Below, one piece after another: positions 1 through 9,902 of a stretch of 64,000 bases of DNA. The notes under the pieces were generated by a model. That model had not been told where the DNA came from. It was given only the letters and a program-made list of their open reading frames with translations, and searched no databases. The stretch's first letter is position 1; each line of letters opens with the position of its first letter. Made by a program: the position numbers and the translations under genes. The stretch is taken from positions 144,909 through 208,908 of IMG/VR virus record IMGVR_UViG_3300043786_000977; one strand, 5' to 3'.

Positions 1-82
1 TTGCCATGGATTGTTTGTTGGGCCGGCGTTTGCGTCCGGGTGAACGCATTGTTTTGTCGGTAAAGGAATTGATAGACGTTGC

Positions 83-159
83 CCAGGTGTAGCTCAGTTG
101 GTTGGAGCGCGTCCCTGATAAGGACGAGGTCGACTGTTCGACTCAGTCCACCTGGACCA
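83..159 (+). tRNA. trnI: tRNA-Ile(GAT)
   Basis: Acceptor CCAGGTG/CACCTGG, D-arm GCTC..GAGC, anticodon arm CGTCC-CTGATAA-GGACG, T-loop TTCGACT, encoded CCA. Confidence 0.95.
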
Positions 160-176
160 TTTTTGAAGTGGGTAAC

Positions 177-260
177 GGGCGAGTGGTGGAATCGCAGACA
201 CGTAGGCCTTAGGAGCCTATGCCGGAAGGCGTGTGGGTTCAATTCCCGCCTCGCCCACCA
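177..260 (+). tRNA. trnL: tRNA-Leu(TAG)
   Basis: Acceptor GGGCGAG/CTCGCCC, anticodon arm TAGGC-CTTAGGA-GCCTA, long variable arm, TTCAATT, CCA. Confidence 0.93.
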
Positions 261-360
261 TTTTAATGTAGCTTTACACGGAGTTGGTTTGTGAGCTGTT
301 TTCCTCGGGTGGTGAAATTGGCAGACACAAGGGACTTGATTGACATACGATAAGTGACCG

Positions 361-390
361 TTGACACTATGCCTACCGTTCTGTTATGAT
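361..390 (+). promoter_or_regulatory. Sigma70-like promoter inside the intron, upstream of the HNH ORF
   Basis: TTGACA-18nt-TATGAT; ATG follows 7 nt later at 397 with no SD (leaderless-like). Confidence 0.55.
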
Positions 391-396
391 GTTGTT

Positions 397-861
397 ATGC
401 GACGACATTACAAGCAGTATACGGACGACGACATAGTTCAAGCAGCAAAACAGGTCAAGTCAATAGCTGGTCTATTACGCATTTTAGGATTACGGCCTGT
501 CGGTGGAAATTACGGTAATATTAAACGGCATCTAAAACGTTTAGATATTGACTGTGCACACTGGACAGGTCGGGCTTGGAATCGTGGTAGCAGGGTTAAA
601 GATTGGGTGCAGTACAGGAAGATAGAACATTTGAAACGTCATATGATCAGACTGACGGGTCATCGGTGTCAACGATGTAGACGACGCCAGTGGCAGACGG
701 TTGATATACCGTTGGAAGTACACCATATTGACGGGGATCGATGTAACAATCGATTAACAAATCTAGAGTTATTGTGCCCCAACTGTCACGCGTTGACAGA
801 TTATTATCGTGGTCGCAAATTGAGCACCGTATCGGTGACGATAGGAGTGAATCCTGGCTAA
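397..861 (+). CDS. Intron-encoded HNH homing endonuclease
   Basis: CxxC...LEVHHIDGDRCNNRLTNLELLCPNCH HNH motif; lies inside the group I intron; ATG start at 397 preferred over TTG at 361. Confidence 0.9.
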   Translation: MRRHYKQYTDDDIVQAAKQVKSIAGLLRILGLRPVGGNYGNIKRHLKRLDIDCAHWTGRAWNRGSRVKDWVQYRKIEHLKRHMIRLTGHRCQRCRRRQWQTVDIPLEVHHIDGDRCNNRLTNLELLCPNCHALTDYYRGRKLSTVSVTIGVNPG

Positions 862-1063
862 GTCGGTAGAACCTAGGCTGTGGTAATGCCGAGCTAGGTC
901 GAAAGACCGAGTGTAGAGACTTTACACCAGGCACCTCGGGAGAGGTGAAGACAAAGTCCAGACCACAATGTGAAAACGATGTGGCAGGAAAATCCCTTAT
1001 CCGTATGGGTGTGCGGGTTCAAGTCCCGCCCCGAGGACCAATACAGCACGTATTATTACGAGA

Positions 1064-1270
1064 ATGACAATGAGTTTGGACAAGTCAATTGAATCTGGGC
1101 GTGAACGACGTCGTCAGTTCCGCGGTGTAAAAGCTGTCGATAGGACATGCCGGAATCATGGTACCTGTAATTGGTGCAAATCAAACAGGGGTTTCGCGAA
1201 TAAACAAGACGAAGAGGCTGCGGACGAACAACTCCGTGCCTGGAAACGAGGAGAACTAGATGAAGACTAA
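1064..1270 (+). CDS. Small basic hypothetical phage protein
   Basis: SD-preceded ORF with CRNHGTCNWC; overlaps the next start. Confidence 0.6.
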   Translation: MTMSLDKSIESGRERRRQFRGVKAVDRTCRNHGTCNWCKSNRGFANKQDEEAADEQLRAWKRGELDED

Positions 1271-2282
1271 AACGAAAATTGACAACTACATCAACCATGT
1301 GTTGTTTGTGTTGGACGAAAGCGGTTCCATGGGGTCCCTGGCGGACGCAGTCGTACAGGTGTTTGATGCACAGGTTGCGCATCTGGCCAAGCGATCACAA
1401 GAACTGGATCAGGAGACACGGGTAACGGTCGTGGTATTCAACGACTCGCAGTATACGCGCACGCTCATCTACGACAAGGATGTACTGCGGTTGCCCAGTC
1501 TGGCCGGTTACTATGTTCCGTACGGCGGGACGCCTTTGATTGACGCGACGCTGACTGCGGTGGCCGATCTACGTATGACGCCTGAGAAGCATGGTGACCA
1601 CGCCTTCCTGGGTTACGTCTTGACGGACGGGCAGGAGAACCGCAGCACTAACACGCCAGCGGCCTTGGCGAAGATGATCCGGGACCTCCCGGACAACTGG
1701 ACACTGGCAGTGTTGGTACCCAACCAGTACGGCGTGCACGAAGCGAAGCGTTTCGGGTTCCCTGCTGACAATATCGCGATATGGGATGCTACAAGCGCCA
1801 AGGGTCTCGACGAGGCCGTCGCAAAGATCCGTACTACGACCGAGACTTTCATGCAGGGTCGTACCCAGGGTATCCGCGGTAGCCGCAGTATCTTCAAGGT
1901 CGACACTTCGAACCTCAAGCACAGCACAGTCAAGCAGGTCTTGGACAAGTTGCCTGCGACTGACTATTCGATCTGGGATGTGCGTACGGACGCCGAGATT
2001 CGCGATTTCGTCGAGTCACGCACCAAACTCCCTTACAAGAAGGGGATGGCGTTTTACATGCTGACCAAACCCGAGATTGTGCAGGCGCGTAAGCGCGTAG
2101 CTGTTCACGAGAAAGCGACGGGCGCCGTGTACAGCGGCGATTCGGCGCGCCAGTTGATAGGGCTACCCGCGGACAAAGCGCGTGTGGTACCAGGTGACTT
2201 CAGTGCCTACGATATCTTCATACAATCCACAAGTGTAAACAGACGTTTGCTCGGTGGTACCAAGTTGTTACTGATTAGTTAA
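1260..2282 (+). CDS. von Willebrand factor A (vWA) domain protein
   Basis: MIDAS LDESGSM, GGTPLIDA, LTDGQEN. Confidence 0.85.
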   Translation: MKTKTKIDNYINHVLFVLDESGSMGSLADAVVQVFDAQVAHLAKRSQELDQETRVTVVVFNDSQYTRTLIYDKDVLRLPSLAGYYVPYGGTPLIDATLTAVADLRMTPEKHGDHAFLGYVLTDGQENRSTNTPAALAKMIRDLPDNWTLAVLVPNQYGVHEAKRFGFPADNIAIWDATSAKGLDEAVAKIRTTTETFMQGRTQGIRGSRSIFKVDTSNLKHSTVKQVLDKLPATDYSIWDVRTDAEIRDFVESRTKLPYKKGMAFYMLTKPEIVQARKRVAVHEKATGAVYSGDSARQLIGLPADKARVVPGDFSAYDIFIQSTSVNRRLLGGTKLLLIS

Positions 2283-2289
2283 GTATGGG

Positions 2290-2375
2290 GCCGGCGTGGC
2301 GGAATGGCAGACGCGATAGACTCAAAATCTATTAGTGGTAACACTGTGGGGGTTCAAGTCCCTCCGCCGGCACCA
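2290..2375 (+). tRNA. trnL: tRNA-Leu(CAA)
   Basis: Acceptor GCCGGCG/CGCCGGC, ATAGA-CTCAAAA-TCTAT, long variable arm, CCA. Confidence 0.95.
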
Positions 2376-2409
2376 GCATGCAGACTCATAGGGCTTCCAG
2401 TATTTTGAA

Positions 2410-2438
2410 TTGACACTTTTCGCAAGAAGTGATATTGT
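2410..2438 (+). promoter_or_regulatory. Sigma70-like promoter for free-standing HNH gene
   Basis: TTGACA-17nt-TATTGT, followed by SD GGAGG and ATG at 2464. Confidence 0.55.
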
Positions 2439-2463
2439 AGTTTCAGAAATGGGAGGAACCATA

Positions 2464-3135
2464 ATGAAACTACAAGACAGCGACATACTTGACGATGTGC
2501 GACGCGTTAGAGTTATGCTCGGTAGAGTTCCGACAGGAAATGACTACAAAGAACACGGACGATTTTGTTTAAATTCCGTGCGCCGGAGATTCAGTAATCA
2601 ATGGAATAAGTGTCTGTTGAAACTCTTCGGAGAAGTTGTGCATACCCAACAGAAAGCGTGGGTAAAGTCTGAATGTGAATTCTGTCATAAGCCGATAACT
2701 TTTCCTCGGAGTTCTTCGAAACGCTTTTGTTCAAAGTCTTGTTCCTGCAAGGGAATCAAGCGGCGCAAACGGAAGGTATGGATTTGCGTGGAGTGTGGTA
2801 AAGAAGCACCGTCAAGGCGCTCACGTTGTGCTGCGTGTTTTGCTGGTGCCGGAATAGCGCGTAAGACGATCGGGGAATACAGAAGTAAAAGGAATGACTC
2901 AAACCGGTACGCAGAAGTACGGGAACATGCGAGAAGGGTCGCACATGTGTTGCCAGATAAATGTCTCGTGTGTGGCTATGATAAGTCTGTGGTTGTGTGT
3001 CATAAGATTCCGATACCGGAGTTCTCTGATGATACGCTTGTGAGCGTAGTCAATGCATTGTCAAATCTGGTGAAGTTGTGTAGGAATCATCATTGGGAGT
3101 ATGACAAGGGATTGCTTAACATTAAGGGCTCGTAG
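2464..3135 (+). CDS. Free-standing HNH endonuclease with Zn-ribbon modules
   Basis: Multiple CxxC pairs; C-terminal VCHKIPI...NALSNLVKLCRNHH; stop codon lies inside the following tRNA. Confidence 0.8.
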   Translation: MKLQDSDILDDVRRVRVMLGRVPTGNDYKEHGRFCLNSVRRRFSNQWNKCLLKLFGEVVHTQQKAWVKSECEFCHKPITFPRSSSKRFCSKSCSCKGIKRRKRKVWICVECGKEAPSRRSRCAACFAGAGIARKTIGEYRSKRNDSNRYAEVREHARRVAHVLPDKCLVCGYDKSVVVCHKIPIPEFSDDTLVSVVNALSNLVKLCRNHHWEYDKGLLNIKGS

Positions 3136-3202
3136 CACAATAGGTTAGTGCTGTAGTCCCATAAACTACGGGTTCTCAGTTCGAGTCTGAGCGAGCCCAC
3201 CA
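3126..3202 (+). tRNA. tRNA(CAT), elongator Met or Ile2, with atypical C33
   Basis: Acceptor GGGCTCG/CGAGCCC (paired 1:72, so not fMet); GTAGT-CCCATAA-ACTAC; CCA. Confidence 0.85.
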
Positions 3203-3219
3203 ATTAACGGGAGAATACA

Positions 3220-3507
3220 ATGGGATGGTTCATGGTTGATCGCTGTCATCACCACAAGTTGACACAAGTCCAGAAAGATGGATACCAGTATTGCGAACAG
3301 TGCGGTAAGGCAATTGTACCTCCGCCTCTACCTCAGGTTCAGCCCACGTTGTGTAAACACAAACTTGAAACGACTGAGAGAGGTGTGCAGATCAAGACAA
3401 GTGCGGGTGCAACCCAAGTACAACATGTACAACGCTGTACCGAGTGTGGTCGTATGTTTACGTATAACGAAACAGTGGGGGCGTATAACGAGCGTAACGC
3501 TCCGTGA
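3220..3507 (+). CDS. Hypothetical Zn-ribbon protein
   Basis: SD GGAG; CEQC and CTEC motifs. Confidence 0.6.
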   Translation: MGWFMVDRCHHHKLTQVQKDGYQYCEQCGKAIVPPPLPQVQPTLCKHKLETTERGVQIKTSAGATQVQHVQRCTECGRMFTYNETVGAYNERNAP

Positions 3508-3606
3508 TACAGCAAAGCCAGTTGATTACACAACGGGTCAACTGGTATACGAATAACCGTTGCAAAACCACAAGCCGGTGACAAAACGGCTGGGACGACA
3601 TGACAG

Positions 3607-4359
3607 ATGAAAGATAAATTAGAAGAACAACCGAGTTTGAAGACGCTTACCGGGCGCACACTGATGCTCGTCGACACGCTGCAGGCGACAGTGAAGGCAC
3701 TCAACGAGTTCAGTACACGGGTGATGGCCACGCTGGTTCTCGGCGCGGAACAGGCTGATTCTGAGATCGAGGCCCTAGTTGACCTTGGTTCGATAGGTAA
3801 ACTCTATACGCAACTGCTGGAGGAACTGGATACGCTGCAGCTCGAAGAGTGCTGTAAGCAGGAGGTTATTACGGCTGCGTCGCACATGTGTAAGATACCT
3901 GATCCTGGTAGCGTAGGTACAGGTGTCGCACGGGCCTTGTTCCGTGGTAACCCGCGGAGCCGGCGATATGCTGTGGCGTTGAATCGACTCTTAGTCGCCG
4001 CACATGATCGGCAGCTACCGAATGCGGAACCAGCACCAGCAAAAGCACAGGCGCCTGCCGCTGCACCCGCGGTGCCAGCAAAAGCATCAGTGCCTGCAGC
4101 TAAACCCGCAGCGCCAGTGAGTAAGGCAGCCGGAGCAGATAAAGCTTCAACACCTAAGGCTTCTGTCTTGGCACGTCTGAAAGAAATCAAGATGGCCGGC
4201 CGCCGGACGAAGGGTGCGTTGACGCTGATTGTCACGGACCTAGAGGACAAAAAGCCCGTCACCGATAAGCAACGGAAGTATCTCACAGAGTGTGCGAGTA
4301 AGATGGTTGAACTTGCACCGTTGAAGACCGAACTTGTACGTCTTGCGCAGGCGACGTGA
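3607..4359 (+). CDS. Hypothetical protein with Ala/Pro/Lys-rich linker
   Basis: 250-aa ORF between genes on the coding strand. Confidence 0.65.
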   Translation: MKDKLEEQPSLKTLTGRTLMLVDTLQATVKALNEFSTRVMATLVLGAEQADSEIEALVDLGSIGKLYTQLLEELDTLQLEECCKQEVITAASHMCKIPDPGSVGTGVARALFRGNPRSRRYAVALNRLLVAAHDRQLPNAEPAPAKAQAPAAAPAVPAKASVPAAKPAAPVSKAAGADKASTPKASVLARLKEIKMAGRRTKGALTLIVTDLEDKKPVTDKQRKYLTECASKMVELAPLKTELVRLAQAT

Positions 4360-4435
4360 ACTGTGGTACCCTGACCCTCTGCCGTAGTTGGGTCAGGGTC
4401 CAACTAATACCAGTTAATCCTTCAGGAGTATTCGT

Positions 4436-6355
4436 ATGTCTACCCTTCCTTCGCTTTATTCGCAGTTTATTCATGTATCGCGGTATGCCAAATGGCAAGA
4501 TTCCGTTATGCGGCGTGAAACATGGGATGAGACTGTTACTCGATATCTTGACTTCATGTGTGAAGAACAATGTTCGGGTAAGATAGATGCAACGACGAAG
4601 AGTGAATTAAGAGATGCTATCGGCTCGTTGGCTGTGATGCCTTCTATGCGGTGCATGATGACAGCAGGCAAGGCACTGGCCAGGGATAACGCGGCTGGCT
4701 TCAACTGCAGTGCTGTGGTGATTGATAATCCCGTAGCCTTCGACGAAATGATGTACCTATTGATGTGTGGCGTTGGTGTGGGTTTCAGCGTCGAGCGCCA
4801 GTTCATCAATCAGCTACCTAACGTACCAGCGCTGCGTCGTTCCAAGACCGTAATCAAGGTCGAGGATTCGCGTATTGGTTGGTCCAATGCATTCCGTGAA
4901 CTGTTGAGCATGTTGTACTCCGGCCGGATCCCCGAATGGGATACGAGTGAGGTACGACCAGCCGGTGCACGTTTGAAGACCTTTGGTGGACGAGCTTCTG
5001 GCCCGGCCCCATTGGAAGACCTGTTTCGCTTCTGTATCGGCATATTCCGTGGTGCCGAGGGTCGCAAGCTGAATTCGCTGGAGTGCCATGACATATGCTG
5101 CAAGATCGGCGAAGTGATTGTCATGGGCGGTGTCCGGCGTTCGGCAGAGATCAGTCTGACGAATCCGTCTGATGATCGTATGCGTTACGCTAAGTCAGGT
5201 AATTGGTATGAGACTGCACCGTGGCGGCGCCAAGCCAACATATCGGCAGTGTATACCGAGAAGCCGGGTATGGATGTGTTTTTCCGAGAGTGGCTGGCAC
5301 TCTATGAGTCCAAGTCAGGAGAACGCGGGATCTTCAATCGTGAAGCTGCCCAGGTGCATATGGCCAAGTGCGGGCGACGGGATAACACACACGACTTCAT
5401 CGTTAATCCCTGTGGTGAGATCCTCCTGCGTTCGGGACAGATGTGTAACCTGTCCGAGGCAGTTGTACGTAAGGATGACAATGCGAAGACCTTGAAAGAG
5501 AAGGTGCGCCTTGCAACAATCCTAGGTACCCTGCAGGCTACCCTGACTAACTTCCGGTATCTCCGGCCACACTGGCAGGATAACACACGGGACGAAGCAT
5601 TACTTGGTGTGAGCCTGACAGGTGTCATGGATAACGCGCTGATGTCGGGGCAGAAGGGTAAGACGGAATTGGCAGGTACGTTGGAGGATCTGCGTAAGTC
5701 AGCAGTCCACGTCAATAAGCAGTGGGCTAAGACGCTTGGAATTAATCCAGCTACTGCCATCACAACCAATAAGCCCTCGGGTACTGTCAGTCAGTTGGTT
5801 GACTGCGCCAGTGGGTTGCACCCACGGTTCAGTGAGCATTATATCCGTACGGTACGTGGCGACATGCACGATCCTGTGACGAAGTTGATGCAGGCCTCAG
5901 GGTTTCCGCATGAACCTGATGTAACGAAACCCGATCATACTGTGGTCTTCAGTTTCCCGATAAAGGCGCCTGAGGGTTGTGAAACTGTGGCCGATGTGGA
6001 TGCGATCGCCCAGTTGGAACTCTGGCGTACCTACCAGGAACACTGGTGTGAACACAAGCCGTCCATGACTGTCTATGTAAAGGAACATCAGTGGATGGAA
6101 GTCGGTGCCTGGGTCTATAAGCACTTCGATGTGATCAGCGGTGTTACATTCCTGCCTGCATCGGATCACTGCTACGCTCAAGCCCCTTATCAGGACATAT
6201 CTGCGAAGGAGTATGAAGCACGCGTGGCTAAGATGCCCACGTCTGTGGATTGGGCGCAATTAGCCCAATACGAGAAGGACGACTCTTCCGTGAACACACG
6301 CGAATATGCTTGCAGCGGTGATAGTTGTGAGACCGTTGATTTGACTTCGAAATGA
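4436..6355 (+). CDS. nrdJ: Class II (adenosylcobalamin-dependent) ribonucleotide reductase
   Basis: PSMR, AGFNC, GGVRRSA, NPCGEI thiyl-radical motif, TTNKPSGTVSQL, C-terminal CSGDSC; no small subunit nearby. Confidence 0.93.
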   Translation: MSTLPSLYSQFIHVSRYAKWQDSVMRRETWDETVTRYLDFMCEEQCSGKIDATTKSELRDAIGSLAVMPSMRCMMTAGKALARDNAAGFNCSAVVIDNPVAFDEMMYLLMCGVGVGFSVERQFINQLPNVPALRRSKTVIKVEDSRIGWSNAFRELLSMLYSGRIPEWDTSEVRPAGARLKTFGGRASGPAPLEDLFRFCIGIFRGAEGRKLNSLECHDICCKIGEVIVMGGVRRSAEISLTNPSDDRMRYAKSGNWYETAPWRRQANISAVYTEKPGMDVFFREWLALYESKSGERGIFNREAAQVHMAKCGRRDNTHDFIVNPCGEILLRSGQMCNLSEAVVRKDDNAKTLKEKVRLATILGTLQATLTNFRYLRPHWQDNTRDEALLGVSLTGVMDNALMSGQKGKTELAGTLEDLRKSAVHVNKQWAKTLGINPATAITTNKPSGTVSQLVDCASGLHPRFSEHYIRTVRGDMHDPVTKLMQASGFPHEPDVTKPDHTVVFSFPIKAPEGCETVADVDAIAQLELWRTYQEHWCEHKPSMTVYVKEHQWMEVGAWVYKHFDVISGVTFLPASDHCYAQAPYQDISAKEYEARVAKMPTSVDWAQLAQYEKDDSSVNTREYACSGDSCETVDLTSK

Positions 6356-6364
6356 TACCCTTGA

Positions 6365-6416
6365 GGCAGAGTCAGTAATATTGGTTATTGACTCTGCCGT
6401 TCTTTATATCTATAGT
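6365..6416 (+). promoter_or_regulatory. Hairpin after nrdJ overlapping a sigma70-like promoter for the HNH gene
   Basis: GGCAGAGTCA/TGACTCTGCC 10-bp stem; TTGACT-17nt-TATAGT. Confidence 0.55.
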
Positions 6417-6482
6417 AAGCGCCATGAATAGGAAAAAACCTAGTTGTGTCTGTGCTTACTGCGGCGAGTCATCTGATCGACG

Positions 6483-7115
6483 ATGAAGAGTGGCAAACTT
6501 ACAATGGTAGAGGCCGGGCGATTGGGGCAGGCGAAATCGCGTGTTACGCAAGCTGCGCAGAAGATAGCGCGTATTCAGGCATATGATGCGCTGGGTAAAG
6601 GTTGTTTGCATTGTGGGACTAAGATACCGTATGTACGCCGGGACACGAAGTTTTGTAACCAGTCATGCGCGGCAAGTTATAATAACCGAGGGGTAAGGCG
6701 CCATGGAAACGCGCCTGCCGTTTGTAAGCAGTGCGCTAAACCGTTGGCGAAAAGTAAGAGGGAGTACTGTTCGGCAGGTTGCCATAAAAACCACATCTGG
6801 GTACAGACCAGGTTATTGATAGAAAAGCGCGGGGACGTTGCCATAAACAAGGTGGCCAATTCCAAATCGGCGCGTCGATATTTACGTGAAACACGTGGCG
6901 CGTGTTGCGCAGTCTGTCGCACAACCGAGTGGTGCGGGCGGGAAGTACCGTTAGTACTCGACCATATTGACGGGAATGCAGATAACTGGTTGCTCGGTAA
7001 CCTGCGCCTTATTTGCGGGAATTGTGATATGCAGACAGCGACTTATAAAGGGAAAAACCGTGGGCATGGGCGATTTGCGCGTCGGCAGCGGTATCACGAT
7101 GGGAAGAGTTTTTAG
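6483..7115 (+). CDS. Free-standing HNH endonuclease
   Basis: LVLDHIDGNADNWLLGNLRLICGNCD; upstream FCNQSC and YCSAGC Zn modules. Confidence 0.9.
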   Translation: MKSGKLTMVEAGRLGQAKSRVTQAAQKIARIQAYDALGKGCLHCGTKIPYVRRDTKFCNQSCAASYNNRGVRRHGNAPAVCKQCAKPLAKSKREYCSAGCHKNHIWVQTRLLIEKRGDVAINKVANSKSARRYLRETRGACCAVCRTTEWCGREVPLVLDHIDGNADNWLLGNLRLICGNCDMQTATYKGKNRGHGRFARRQRYHDGKSF

Positions 7116-7116
7116 T

Positions 7117-7192
7117 GCTCCTGTAGCTCAATTGGTAGAGCGGCTCACCTGTAATGAGCGGGTTGGGGATTCAATTTCCTCCGGGAGCTCCA
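7117..7192 (+). tRNA. trnT: tRNA-Thr(TGT) with atypical C33 and A53:U61
   Basis: Acceptor GCTCCTG/CGGGAGC, GCTCA-CCTGTAA-TGAGC, T-arm GGGGA-TTCAATT-TCCTC, CCA. Confidence 0.88.
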
Positions 7193-7207
7193 ATACGAAA
7201 GATTAAG

Positions 7208-7510
7208 ATGACACAGGATGACGAATTCACGTTAGTCTGCGAGGCCGGTGATACGGATGGCAGACCGGCCGAGACGAAGTTGTTGAGCCGCAGTGGCAAA
7301 GTGTATAAGGTGCTGGCTGCGACTGTACCTAGTATGTTTCGTCGTCTGAGTCCGGAAGACGAACGTGAGTTCATCGCATGGGCACGGAGCCACGCAGATC
7401 ATGAGATCCGTGCGATCTACCATCCAGTTATCCAGAATGAAATGTTTTTGATACGACAGAACCGCGCCTCTTTACAAGGACAAACTCATGGGAACGATAA
7501 CGCTGAATAG
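7208..7510 (+). CDS. Hypothetical protein
   Basis: ATG just after tRNA-Thr (the ORF-track start overlaps the tRNA). Confidence 0.55.
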   Translation: MTQDDEFTLVCEAGDTDGRPAETKLLSRSGKVYKVLAATVPSMFRRLSPEDEREFIAWARSHADHEIRAIYHPVIQNEMFLIRQNRASLQGQTHGNDNAE

Positions 7511-7655
7511 CAAGGGATCACGGAACCGTGTACGCAACCGCGACCAGTACCGTAAGAATTTCGACGATATAGACTGGAAGACCAAAGCACCAGTCAGCGG
7601 TAATGATTTGACTTCTGAAGCCGAACAACGTAACATGAAAAGGAAAACTAAATGA
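7488..7655 (+). CDS. Small basic hypothetical protein (55 aa, not in ORF track)
   Basis: MGTITLNSKGSRNRVRNRDQYRKNFDDIDW...; SD AAGGA; ATGA overlap with the next gene. Confidence 0.5.
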   Translation: MGTITLNSKGSRNRVRNRDQYRKNFDDIDWKTKAPVSGNDLTSEAEQRNMKRKTK

Positions 7656-7936
7656 GCACGATCGCGTTGGCTGTTATCTGTGGGTTGATCGGGTACGTAG
7701 TGGCTGTGGCCACATGCCTGTGGTTAGGACAGCGGTTATACTGGTTTCGGTCACCGGTGACGCTGTGGTCCCTTAACATGACATTCACCAATGATAATGG
7801 GCATGTGGCGGCCGGCGCCCACGGAATCGGTGGCTCGACGCATATTGTGTTCATGGACGAGCATAGTCGGACTTGCCTTGTGCCGATCGAGGAAGCCGAG
7901 AACGATCCGTTGATGTTCAAGTACATAGCAGGGTAG
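7652..7936 (+). CDS. Hypothetical membrane protein
   Basis: Hydrophobic N-terminal helix. Confidence 0.6.
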   Translation: MSTIALAVICGLIGYVVAVATCLWLGQRLYWFRSPVTLWSLNMTFTNDNGHVAAGAHGIGGSTHIVFMDEHSRTCLVPIEEAENDPLMFKYIAG

Positions 7937-7943
7937 GTGACAT

Positions 7944-8402
7944 ATGAGCCAGATAGTGCGTGCACGATATCAAGTAGAGGTTTTGTGTGTAGATGCCGTG
8001 GGTGTCATGAAGAACCGTTGCATTAAAGCCACGGCTTCTGGTATCTTGACTGTGCTGGCCACTGATGCCGTATTCGTGGTAGGTACGGGGTCACTCGTGG
8101 CACAGTTGGAATTGACTGCCCTTAGAGATCCGGACGGTGCGGATATACTGAATAAGGTACCCGCTGACAAACGGAAGACAGAGAGTAGCACGTATATGAT
8201 CAAGGATCAGGTACTAACACTCGATACATCGATCATGGACGGTGCAGTAGATCTCGCTATTAGTGTTCGGCTTGGAACCAAGGGTGAGACCCTGGATGAT
8301 GGTAAGGTAACTTGTACCATCAACAAATGGCTGTGGAAACTCATGTTGAAGAGTGCGACCGCTACCTTTACAGGGACGTGCAAGGAATTTATGGGGGCAT
8401 AG
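7944..8402 (+). CDS. Hypothetical protein
   Basis: 152-aa ORF; stop lies within the 5' end of tRNA-Ala. Confidence 0.6.
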   Translation: MSQIVRARYQVEVLCVDAVGVMKNRCIKATASGILTVLATDAVFVVGTGSLVAQLELTALRDPDGADILNKVPADKRKTESSTYMIKDQVLTLDTSIMDGAVDLAISVRLGTKGETLDDGKVTCTINKWLWKLMLKSATATFTGTCKEFMGA

Positions 8403-8468
8403 CTCAACTGGTAGAGCGCCAGCTTTGCAAGCTGGATGTTGCGAGTTCGACTCTCGCTGCTTCCACCA
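8393..8468 (+). tRNA. trnA: tRNA-Ala(TGC)
   Basis: GGGGGCA/TGCTTCC with G3:U70, CCAGC-TTTGCAA-GCTGG, CCA. Confidence 0.95.
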
Positions 8469-8474
8469 ATCTCT

Positions 8475-8562
8475 TGAGGGGTATGCCAAACGGCTGAAGG
8501 CAGCGGACTGTAAATCCGTGACGTAAGATACACTGGAGGTTCAAATCCTCTCCCCTCAACCA
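8475..8562 (+). tRNA. trnY: tRNA-Tyr(GTA)
   Basis: TGAGGGG/CCCCTCA, GCGGA-CTGTAAA-TCCGT, long variable arm, CCA. Confidence 0.93.
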
Positions 8563-8576
8563 ATCAAAGGAACAAA

Positions 8577-8810
8577 ATGAACTCGAAATTACAAATCACG
8601 CTATGTGTGTTGGCTTGTGGTGCCTATGTACTCATAACGGCTCTGGCCAGCGCCATGCTGATGAGTGCACGCAGTAATCGTGCGCTGCGTTCGGCTACGC
8701 AGACGTGCAGTCTGACTATCAGTAACCTCACGGTACGCGCTGCCGAGCATGAATACGTGTTGCGCGCATTGGTTCAGTTAGAGGCCCAGCGTGAGGTACA
8801 GAAGCAATGA
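8577..8810 (+). CDS. Hypothetical membrane-anchored protein
   Basis: N-terminal hydrophobic helix, SD AAAGGA. Confidence 0.55.
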   Translation: MNSKLQITLCVLACGAYVLITALASAMLMSARSNRALRSATQTCSLTISNLTVRAAEHEYVLRALVQLEAQREVQKQ

Positions 8811-9322
8811 TTAAGGCGATAGACATATATTCACGGATGGAAGTAAAGCGTCTTGTGCAGTCTGCATCTATTGTTCCTGTAACGCCGCTACCTTTTACTT
8901 GGCATCTGATTTCGGTATACACGGAGCCCCACGCAGAAATGTTGGTACCCGAATCCGTTATTCGTTTGAAACAGCTGGGTTTAGACGAGTCGCTGTCACT
9001 CCGGTTCAGCGATATTACAGACGTGGCCGATTATGAGCGCCGCAAGGAAGAGTATCCCAGTTATGTGAACCTGTTCGACACGACTCATGCCCAACAGGTT
9101 GTAGATTTCCTGCTGCGCATTCAAGCACGGCCCGGACCCGAAGTATTGTTCGTGCATTGCGACGCCGGCATATCGCGCTCGGGCGCAATAGGTACCTTTG
9201 CACGTCAGTTGTTCAATCTGGATATTGAAAAGTTTCTTCGACGCAACTCACAGATTCTGCCTAACGAGTATGTGCTTAAGTTGTTACATGCGGAGTTGGA
9301 CTCACGAGGCGGTGCAGTATGA
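8807..9322 (+). CDS. Protein-tyrosine/dual-specificity (CX5R) phosphatase family protein
   Basis: VHCDAGISRSGA P-loop; LRFSDI acid loop; PN motif near C-terminus. Confidence 0.85.
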   Translation: MIKAIDIYSRMEVKRLVQSASIVPVTPLPFTWHLISVYTEPHAEMLVPESVIRLKQLGLDESLSLRFSDITDVADYERRKEEYPSYVNLFDTTHAQQVVDFLLRIQARPGPEVLFVHCDAGISRSGAIGTFARQLFNLDIEKFLRRNSQILPNEYVLKLLHAELDSRGGAV

Positions 9323-9451
9323 GTAGCGGTTACGGCACCGGCCTTGAAGGTCTGGTTGTGATGGCATTCGTTGGTGTGACGCTCGGCGTGTGGAAGATCG
9401 TTGATATCATTATCTGGATCTGTCGTCATGTGCATGTGAGTTTCTAATTAC

Positions 9452-9527
9452 TCCAGGATAGCTCAGTTGGTAGAGCGCCTGACTGTTAATCAGGTGGTCG
9501 CAGGTTCGAGTCCTGCTCCTGGAGCCA
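9452..9527 (+). tRNA. trnN: tRNA-Asn(GTT)
   Basis: TCCAGGA/TCCTGGA, CCTGA-CTGTTAA-TCAGG, CCA. Confidence 0.95.
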
Positions 9528-9535
9528 ATCAATCT

Positions 9536-9612
9536 GCATCGGTGGTCGAGTGGTTTAAGGCAGCGGTCTGCAAAACCGCTTTTCACAGGTTCGAACCCTG
9601 TCCGGTGCTCCA
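9536..9612 (+). tRNA. trnC: tRNA-Cys(GCA)
   Basis: GCATCGG/CCGGTGC, U73 discriminator, GCGGT-CTGCAAA-ACCGC, CCA. Confidence 0.93.
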
Positions 9613-9827
9613 TTATGAGAAACGTGAAATGCCATGGTTGTAATGCACAACTGACAGTCGAGAAGCGTGCCTACCCTAGTCACTACTACTGTACAGCGCG
9701 CTGTCATGCCCCCGCATGTAAGTTACGCCAGTTCGAACAATTCGCTGGACAGCAATTACGCCGCGGATGGTGTTATAACGGTACTCGAATAGTTCGCATA
9801 ACATGATGTTGAACGACTCAATTTAAC

Positions 9828-9902
9828 GGCGGTTATTGTTTAGTGGTAGAACGACAGATTGTGGATCTGTCCGCACGAGTTCGATTCTCGTTAACCGCCC
9901 CA
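9828..9902 (+). tRNA. trnH: tRNA-His(GTG)
   Basis: 8-bp acceptor with encoded G-1 (GGCGGTTA/TAACCGCC), ACAGA-TTGTGGA-TCTGT, CCA. Confidence 0.93.

Follow-up and report, generated by a model that had tools for sequence, protein, structure and literature searches.

We found that a 209-kb lake-water phage carries its only tRNA-Leu(UAA) gene split by a group I intron, of the self-splicing type, which houses an HNH homing endonuclease gene in its P1 loop. This intron is one example of a large set of phage tRNA introns that we could not find described in the literature searched, which was limited to open-access papers and bioRxiv, so that a prior description elsewhere cannot be excluded. The stretch of DNA analysed here (the window, 64,000 nt) is the last 64 kb of the 208,908-bp IMG/VR virus record IMGVR_UViG_3300043786_000977 (positions 144,909 to 208,908), a genome with direct terminal repeats and 52% G+C whose DNA is found in lake and freshwater metagenomes. 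All parts of the intron-bearing tRNA gene described below lie on the given (+) strand. An earlier note, made from the sequence alone, had proposed a split tRNA-Leu(UAA) gene with an HNH-bearing group I intron at 303-1040, and this observation proved correct, including its boundaries. Its interpretation, that the intron is a mobile, endonuclease-bearing member of the cyanobacterial/plastid trnL(UAA) lineage, was only partly supported, as discussed below.

The 5' exon (303-337) comprises the acceptor 5' strand, the D arm and the 5' half of the anticodon arm, and ends in GGGACUU, with U34 as the last exon base. The 3' exon (989-1040) starts with AAAAUCCCU and comprises AAAA, the 3' half of the anticodon stem, a long variable arm, the T arm, the acceptor 3' strand, A73 and an encoded CCA. 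Joined, the two exons give an 87-nt class II tRNA with the anticodon loop CUUAAAA. ARAGORN in intron mode returned tRNA-Leu(taa) at [303,1040] with a 651-nt intron, whereas standard ARAGORN and the Rfam tRNA model missed the gene. The intron mode has its own shortcomings, since it shifts some boundaries by one base (it called Phe GAA where the gene is Leu UAA) and fuses neighbouring tRNAs, which accounts for its other "intron" calls in this genome. We therefore corrected boundaries with the rule that U precedes the intron and G ends it. The phage has 26 intact tRNA genes in addition to the split one, and a tmRNA (record positions 130368-130758, tag GKQPSKAEPMKLAA), all within one 32-kb region (record positions 122906-154810, of which window 83-9902 is the end). 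Among these 27 tRNA genes, the split gene is the only tRNA-Leu(UAA), so that, as the note had stated, the phage's own UUA-reading tRNA depends on splicing.

The 651-nt insert (338-988) is a group I intron of the bacterial tRNA-intron (IC3-like) type. The general Rfam model RF00028 matched 804-982 over its whole length but at only 24 bits, well below the cut-off of 50 (E 8.5e-4 on 851 nt; E 5e-5 on the whole genome, where it was the single hit), and no intron was found in the window at the gathering threshold. Comparison provides much stronger evidence. The locus L012 (L-numbers denote the loci compared here) has the same arrangement of tRNA-Leu(UAA) exon, HNH gene, core at 41.8 bits, omega-G and exon. 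Even this 41.8-bit match went unreported when ten loci were scanned together, because the filters tighten with more sequence; the silence of a pooled Rfam scan was thus not taken as evidence of absence. A core motif shared by the window and L012 (GTAGAGACT, a gap, TGAAGRCAWAGTCC) found at least 119 stretches in IMG/VR, and in 96 of these an intron-split tRNA spans the motif. After boundary correction, 34 distinct introns, the window's included, sit at the same CUU|AAAA site of tRNA-Leu(UAA). A covariance model (R1) built from 17 other phage tRNA-Leu intron cores, with the window excluded, hit 818-962 at 108 bits (E 7.3e-23) over the full model length, and this was the only hit in 64 kb. The general model is weak on this compact subgroup, and the match is not due to chance.

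The position of the endonuclease gene follows from the location of the guide sequence. ORF-less relatives are 185-290 nt long and carry the guide sequence GAGC, within the motif AAAUUGAGCACC, 6-13 nt after their splice site. In the window the same AAAUUGAGCACC lies 484 nt downstream of the 5' splice site, with the guide sequence GAG at 822-824, which places the ORF in the P1 loop, as the note had proposed. The 5' strand of P1 (335-341, CUU|GAUU, with the splice site after U337) pairs with the 3' strand (818-824, AAUUGAG) as C-G, U-A, U.G, G.U, A-U, U-A and U-A, that is, three exon-side and four intron-side pairs, including the U337.G822 wobble at the splice site. GAG is invariant in 19 aligned phage tRNA-Leu introns. 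We also looked for an alternative guide sequence near the 5' splice site, which would put the ORF outside P1, but none gives a U.G pair, and homology fixes the guide sequence at 822-824. About 12 other distinct phage introns share this layout (see also loci L013, L018 and L020).

The rest of the core is compact. The P2 hairpin (825-849) has a GNRA loop, GUGA (835-838). The 5' strand of P3 (853-857, CCUGG) pairs with 927-931 (CCAGG). P4 (863-868 with 887-892) encloses a reduced P5 (869-886), and is followed by a P6 hairpin (894-911) with a GAAA loop (901-904). The 5' strand of P7 (918-923, GACUUU, within the conserved GUAGAGACU) pairs with 953-958 (AAAGUC), which is preceded by J8/7 AAGAC (948-952). 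P8 (932-947) has a GGGA loop, and P9 (963-984) has a GAAA loop (972-975) and is followed by CAG and the terminal omega-G988, directly before AAAAUCC of the 3' exon. P2, P6, P8 and P9 also appear in the minimum-energy fold. On an alignment of 19 cores we tested 32 pairs in P2, P3, P4, P7 (including the P3/P7 pseudoknot), P8, P9 and P9a; P5 and P6 were left out because the MAFFT register varies there. Of all cells, 98.5% are paired, against 25-45% when partners are slid by 1-3 columns; 19 pairs show compensatory changes, in 102 cells, and no shuffle of 500 reached the observed covariation score. In P2 the outer pairs covary, in P3 all five pairs show compensatory changes across the family, and in P7 the 922/954 pair is U-A in 5 sequences and A-U in 14. 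The window has compensations of its own in P3 (CCUGG/CCAGG), at the U-A/A-U switch in P7, and at A868-U887 in P4, the last found only in the window.

These data also bear on the possibility that the ribozyme no longer splices, that the tRNA-Leu(UAA) is a pseudogene and that only the selfish HNH gene is alive. In favor of such decay are the sub-threshold Rfam score, the weak and poorly paired P5 and the fact that the window is the longest branch among the tRNA-Leu introns in the tree, while splicing itself is inferred in the absence of RNA evidence. However, every tested helix is intact, with lineage-specific compensatory pairs, the conserved J6/7-P7 and J8/7 motifs, omega-G and the U.G pair are all present, the exons form a flawless tRNA with encoded CCA, and the family model scores 108 bits. 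We consider a decayed intron unlikely, and the feature very probably a functional intron with a homing endonuclease.

The ORF at 397-861 encodes an intact HNH endonuclease of 154 aa, full length relative to its homologs, with CxxC at residues 91-94, HH at 109-110 and CxxCH at 127-131. Pfam HNH_3 (30.1 bits) and HNH (23.5 bits) both match residues 91-131 over their cut-offs, and PHROG 10822 matches at 1.9e-31, whereas a PDB sequence search returned nothing meaningful, revealing no solved or characterised close relative. Homology to free-standing relatives ends near residue 141. The last ~13 codons read through the guide sequence, P2 and the 5' strand of P3, as the note had claimed, and the stop codon TAA (859-861) lies in J3/4. 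In all other P1-loop cases the ORF end likewise abuts or overlaps the guide sequence. The best sigma-70-like site in 1-3500 lies inside the P1 loop at 361-390 (TTGACA, 18 nt, TG-n-TATGAT; 11 of 12 matches with an extended -10), although it is a consensus match only. The predicted transcript start falls at about the ATG at 397, which has no Shine-Dalgarno sequence before it, so that a leaderless HNH mRNA may be inferred. A second, unrelated HNH gene (2410-3135; HNH_repeat plus HNH_2) sits between tRNA-Leu(CAA) (2290-2375) and tRNA-Met (3126-3202), overlapping the latter by about 10 nt, and it also starts at a sigma-70-like site (2410-2438).

The intron shares its gene, its U34|A35 insertion site and its overall fold with the classic cyanobacterial/plastid trnL(UAA) intron (Kuhsel et al. 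1990, as cited in PMC3984707), which favors the note's reading of it as a member of that lineage; it would then be a direct offshoot that gained an endonuclease gene, for example in a cyanophage. The two also share the short 3-bp exon part of P1 and the compact core architecture, and the P1 motif AAAUUGAGC resembles the cyanobacterial AAAAUUGAGCC. A looser pattern ending in the 3' exon, however, found 56 tRNA-Leu(UAA) introns among bacterial genomes, from Alphaproteobacteria, Gammaproteobacteria, Acidobacteriota, Bacteroidota, Planctomycetota, Bacillota and Cyanobacteriota. In trees of 104-105 cores, the five cyanobacterial introns (L198, L236, L259, L279, L285) form one clade (100/100) on a long branch inside a bacterial tRNA-Leu group. 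The window lies elsewhere, on a long branch whose nearest row is L096, a phage tRNA-Leu intron that also has a P1-loop ORF; in the quick tree it falls in a 97% supported set of 24 rows, 22 of them from phages. Forcing the window to be sister to the cyanobacterial clade costs 21.9 lnL (AU p 0.044), a marginal rejection that rests on about 200 columns, a long branch and a sampling biased by the search patterns. Mean core identity to the window is 59% for phage Leu introns (maximum 66%), 59% for other phage tRNA introns, 57% for bacterial Leu introns and 53.5% (52-55%) for cyanobacterial ones, the lowest of any group. P4, P7 and J8/7 carry the phage and other-bacterial motifs rather than the cyanobacterial ones. 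Membership in the cyanobacterial/plastid lineage in particular is thus not supported and appears very unlikely. The note's remark that introns at this site are normally ORF-less holds for the cyanobacterial introns sampled, but at least 19 of the 33 distinct other phage tRNA-Leu(UAA) introns sampled are long enough to carry an ORF, mostly of this HNH family.

The closest homologs of the endonuclease (L002-L010, 50-58% identity) are free-standing genes. Each lies within about 25 nt of a tRNA gene with a Leu anticodon in a phage tRNA cluster, and both a motif search and the family model found no intron core nearby. In the protein tree the window sits in a 99% supported clade with seven such genes. 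Other intron-borne members (41% identity or less) fall elsewhere, with free-standing, P1-loop and other-loop states intermixed, and intron-embedded and free-standing states interchange at least 4-6 times. HNH-bearing trnL introns also occur on contigs binned with Bacteroidales and other MAGs, and in the 595-kb phage LR756511, where the ORF is in the P6 loop. The closest homolog of all (58% identity, free-standing; L002:3001-3553) lies 11 nt upstream of a tRNA-Leu(UAA)-like gene that carries a 38-nt insert, a perfect 11-bp hairpin, at exactly the CUU|AAAA site. The insert is far too short for a group I ribozyme and could be a scar, a mini-intron of unknown removal or a spoiler of the endonuclease target.

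Taken together, these results lead us to view the locus as a composite mobile element, a reading to which we assign a probability of about 0.8. The identity of the element, namely an IC3-like group I intron inserted between U34 and A35 of the phage's only tRNA-Leu(UAA) gene and carrying an HNH gene in the loop of P1, is shown by sequence and comparison; splicing and exon ligation, endonuclease expression and its promoter, site-specific cleavage, mobility and the origin of the endonuclease are inferred. In this view, the tRNA cluster is transcribed, the 5' splice site pairs over 480 nt with AAUUGAG, and the compact core (825-988) folds into P2-P9. Exogenous G would attack after U337, omega-G988 would define the 3' site and ligation would restore the anticodon loop CUUAAAA, although a 484-nt P1 loop closed by so few pairs could slow folding. 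The HNH would probably be made from its own promoter as a leaderless mRNA, and because the ORF reads through the guide sequence, P2 and P3, translation and ribozyme folding would exclude each other on one RNA molecule. The enzyme would cut or nick intron-less tRNA-Leu genes of co-infecting relatives, and repair would copy the intron in. Finally, the endonuclease gene would have been recruited from a lineage of free-standing HNH genes that sit beside tRNA-Leu genes in phage tRNA clusters.

It is also possible, though in our view unlikely, that the intron splices but the HNH is not matched to its insertion site. In such a safe-harbour or collaborative variant, a free-standing-type endonuclease would cut elsewhere in or near tRNA-Leu genes and merely lodge in the P1 loop, and the intron would move only by co-conversion (trans or collaborative homing). 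On one hand, the nearest homologs sit next to tRNA-Leu(UAA), (CAA) and (UAG) genes alike, so the cut site need not be the intron insertion site; the repeated interchange between embedded and free-standing states and the apparent promoter of the ORF's own point in the same direction. On the other hand, the same HNH family recurs inside tRNA-Leu(UAA) introns in two different loops (P1 and P6), as one would expect if its target were the anticodon region of that gene.

As for mobility, contigs of four independent lake or freshwater metagenome runs (listed years 2016-2024) carry the same allele, 100% identical, across the exon-intron junctions. No intron-less allele of this phage appeared in these DNA runs; the intron-less and ORF-less tRNA-Leu genes seen there, which account for the joints at 337, belong to other organisms. 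At the family level the distribution is patchy. The note's idea that phages could shuttle such introns between tRNA genes gained support: a phage tRNA-Leu(UAA) intron (L082:1572-1756) and a phage tRNA-Lys(UUU) intron (L158) are 95% identical over 180 nt, although their host tRNAs are unrelated apart from the shared flank CAGACUU, which suggests a recent move between tRNA genes. Introns with the same core interrupt many other phage tRNAs (among IMG/VR loci L052-L170), including Lys UUU (34/35), Asn GUU (35/36), CAU Met/Ile (36/37, ending in CAAACCGG), Gln, Thr, Ser, Arg, Leu CAA and tRNAs with stop-codon anticodons (cta, tta: L054, L060, L167). A few tRNA-Leu(UAA) genes have the intron one base earlier, after U33 (L062, L135, L136, L168). 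The 479-nt tRNA-Leu(UAA) intron at L152:2900-3378 has inserts in P6 and P9 without a long ORF, and its P6 insert begins with a stretch that resembles the 5' half of a tRNA-Leu gene.

Several known systems resemble this element in part. The Azoarcus tRNA-Ile(CAU) and related IC3 introns of proteobacterial tRNA genes share the core motifs GUGUAGAGACU and GGUGAAG-CAUAGUCC, the UUCGGYG P4 and GNRA-capped P2 and P9, and the Azoarcus intron ends in CAAACCGG, as do phage introns after CAU (e.g. L063); they differ in tRNA and insertion site (36/37), are ORF-less and reside on bacterial chromosomes. The Synechocystis tRNA-fMet intron encoding I-Ssp6803I (Bonocora and Shub 2001, cited in PMC3984707) is likewise a tRNA group I intron carrying a homing endonuclease aimed at the anticodon region of a tRNA gene, but it interrupts a different tRNA on a cyanobacterial chromosome. 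I-Ssp6803I is a PD-(D/E)XK nuclease, not an HNH. Phage group I introns with HNH endonucleases (I-HmuI in SPO1, I-BasI in Bastille, I-TevIII; PMC3706429, PMC2790892, PMC3984707) also hold the gene in a peripheral loop, and the ORF can extend into core sequence (PMC3984707), but all of those interrupt protein-coding genes. Free-standing homing endonucleases, such as F-CphI with the psbA intron, T4 mobE with I-TevIII and T4 SegB in the tRNA cluster (PMC3984707, PMC2790892, PMC2330249), are comparable in that the window's HNH clade otherwise consists of free-standing genes wedged between phage tRNA genes, as SegB is; here, however, the gene is already inside the intron, and SegB is a GIY-YIG enzyme. 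The models of endonuclease-gene invasion and collaborative homing summarised in PMC3984707 fit the observed pattern, any cleavage by this HNH clade being inferred.

In the textbook view, group I introns of bacterial tRNA genes, above all the trnL(UAA) intron shared by cyanobacteria and plastids, are a standard case in the debate over ancient versus mobile introns, whereas phage introns are known from protein-coding genes only. A 2014 review states that all phage introns observed to date are in protein-coding genes, despite many phage tRNA genes (PMC3984707). We found no later report of phage tRNA group I introns in the literature searched, nor in papers on crAss-like phages, jumbo phages, Bastillevirinae introns, archaeal group I introns and phage ZZ1. 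Our results indicate that phages carry the tRNA type of intron in numbers, often with an HNH gene and sometimes nearly identical in different tRNA genes, which provides a plausible vehicle for horizontal spread. Close relatives of one endonuclease are found free-standing beside the target gene family, inside the P1 loop and inside the P6 loop, a natural series that can test the invasion and collaborative-homing models for how mobile introns arise. A broader reading, tentative and somewhat less likely than not, is that phage tRNA clusters are a major, overlooked reservoir and exchange arena for the compact group I introns of bacterial tRNA genes. Introns would hop between different tRNA genes, one HNH lineage specialised on tRNA-Leu genes would cycle between free-standing, P1-loop and P6-loop positions, and the window would capture a recent recruitment of a free-standing endonuclease gene into an ORF-less intron. 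If so, how composite mobile introns originate and whether the "ancient" trnL intron spreads horizontally would become directly testable with natural intermediates.

Standard tRNA finders and phage annotations miss these genes (the window, Atu_ph07, Daredevil), so that phage tRNA complements are under-counted and spurious "hypothetical proteins" are called over intron cores. A nucleotide search of GenBank phages with the window stretch gave no match, but cultured phages do carry unannotated intron-split tRNA genes: Agrobacterium phage Atu_ph07 (MF403008; L293:1253-1614) has a tRNA-Leu(UAA) gene with a 278-nt intron, over whose core a "hypothetical protein" CDS is annotated, and Gordonia phage Daredevil (NC_048021; L292:1040-1351) has a tRNA-Lys(UUU) gene with a 238-nt intron. 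In Pelagibacter phage HTVC120P (L291:981-2155), a similar compact core lies between two ORFs both annotated as "capsid protein", which is probably a group I intron in the capsid gene. Phage tRNA clusters near the HNH homologs also hold a ROOL RNA (280 bits), a skipping-rope RNA (77.9 bits) and an RNase P-like match below the cut-off (58 bits), at L014:4577-5169, L013:5444-5523 and L010:2091-2535. In the window itself, a vWA-domain protein (1260-2282; PHROG 26613, 1.2e-104) is encoded directly downstream of the intron-bearing tRNA, inside the tRNA cluster.
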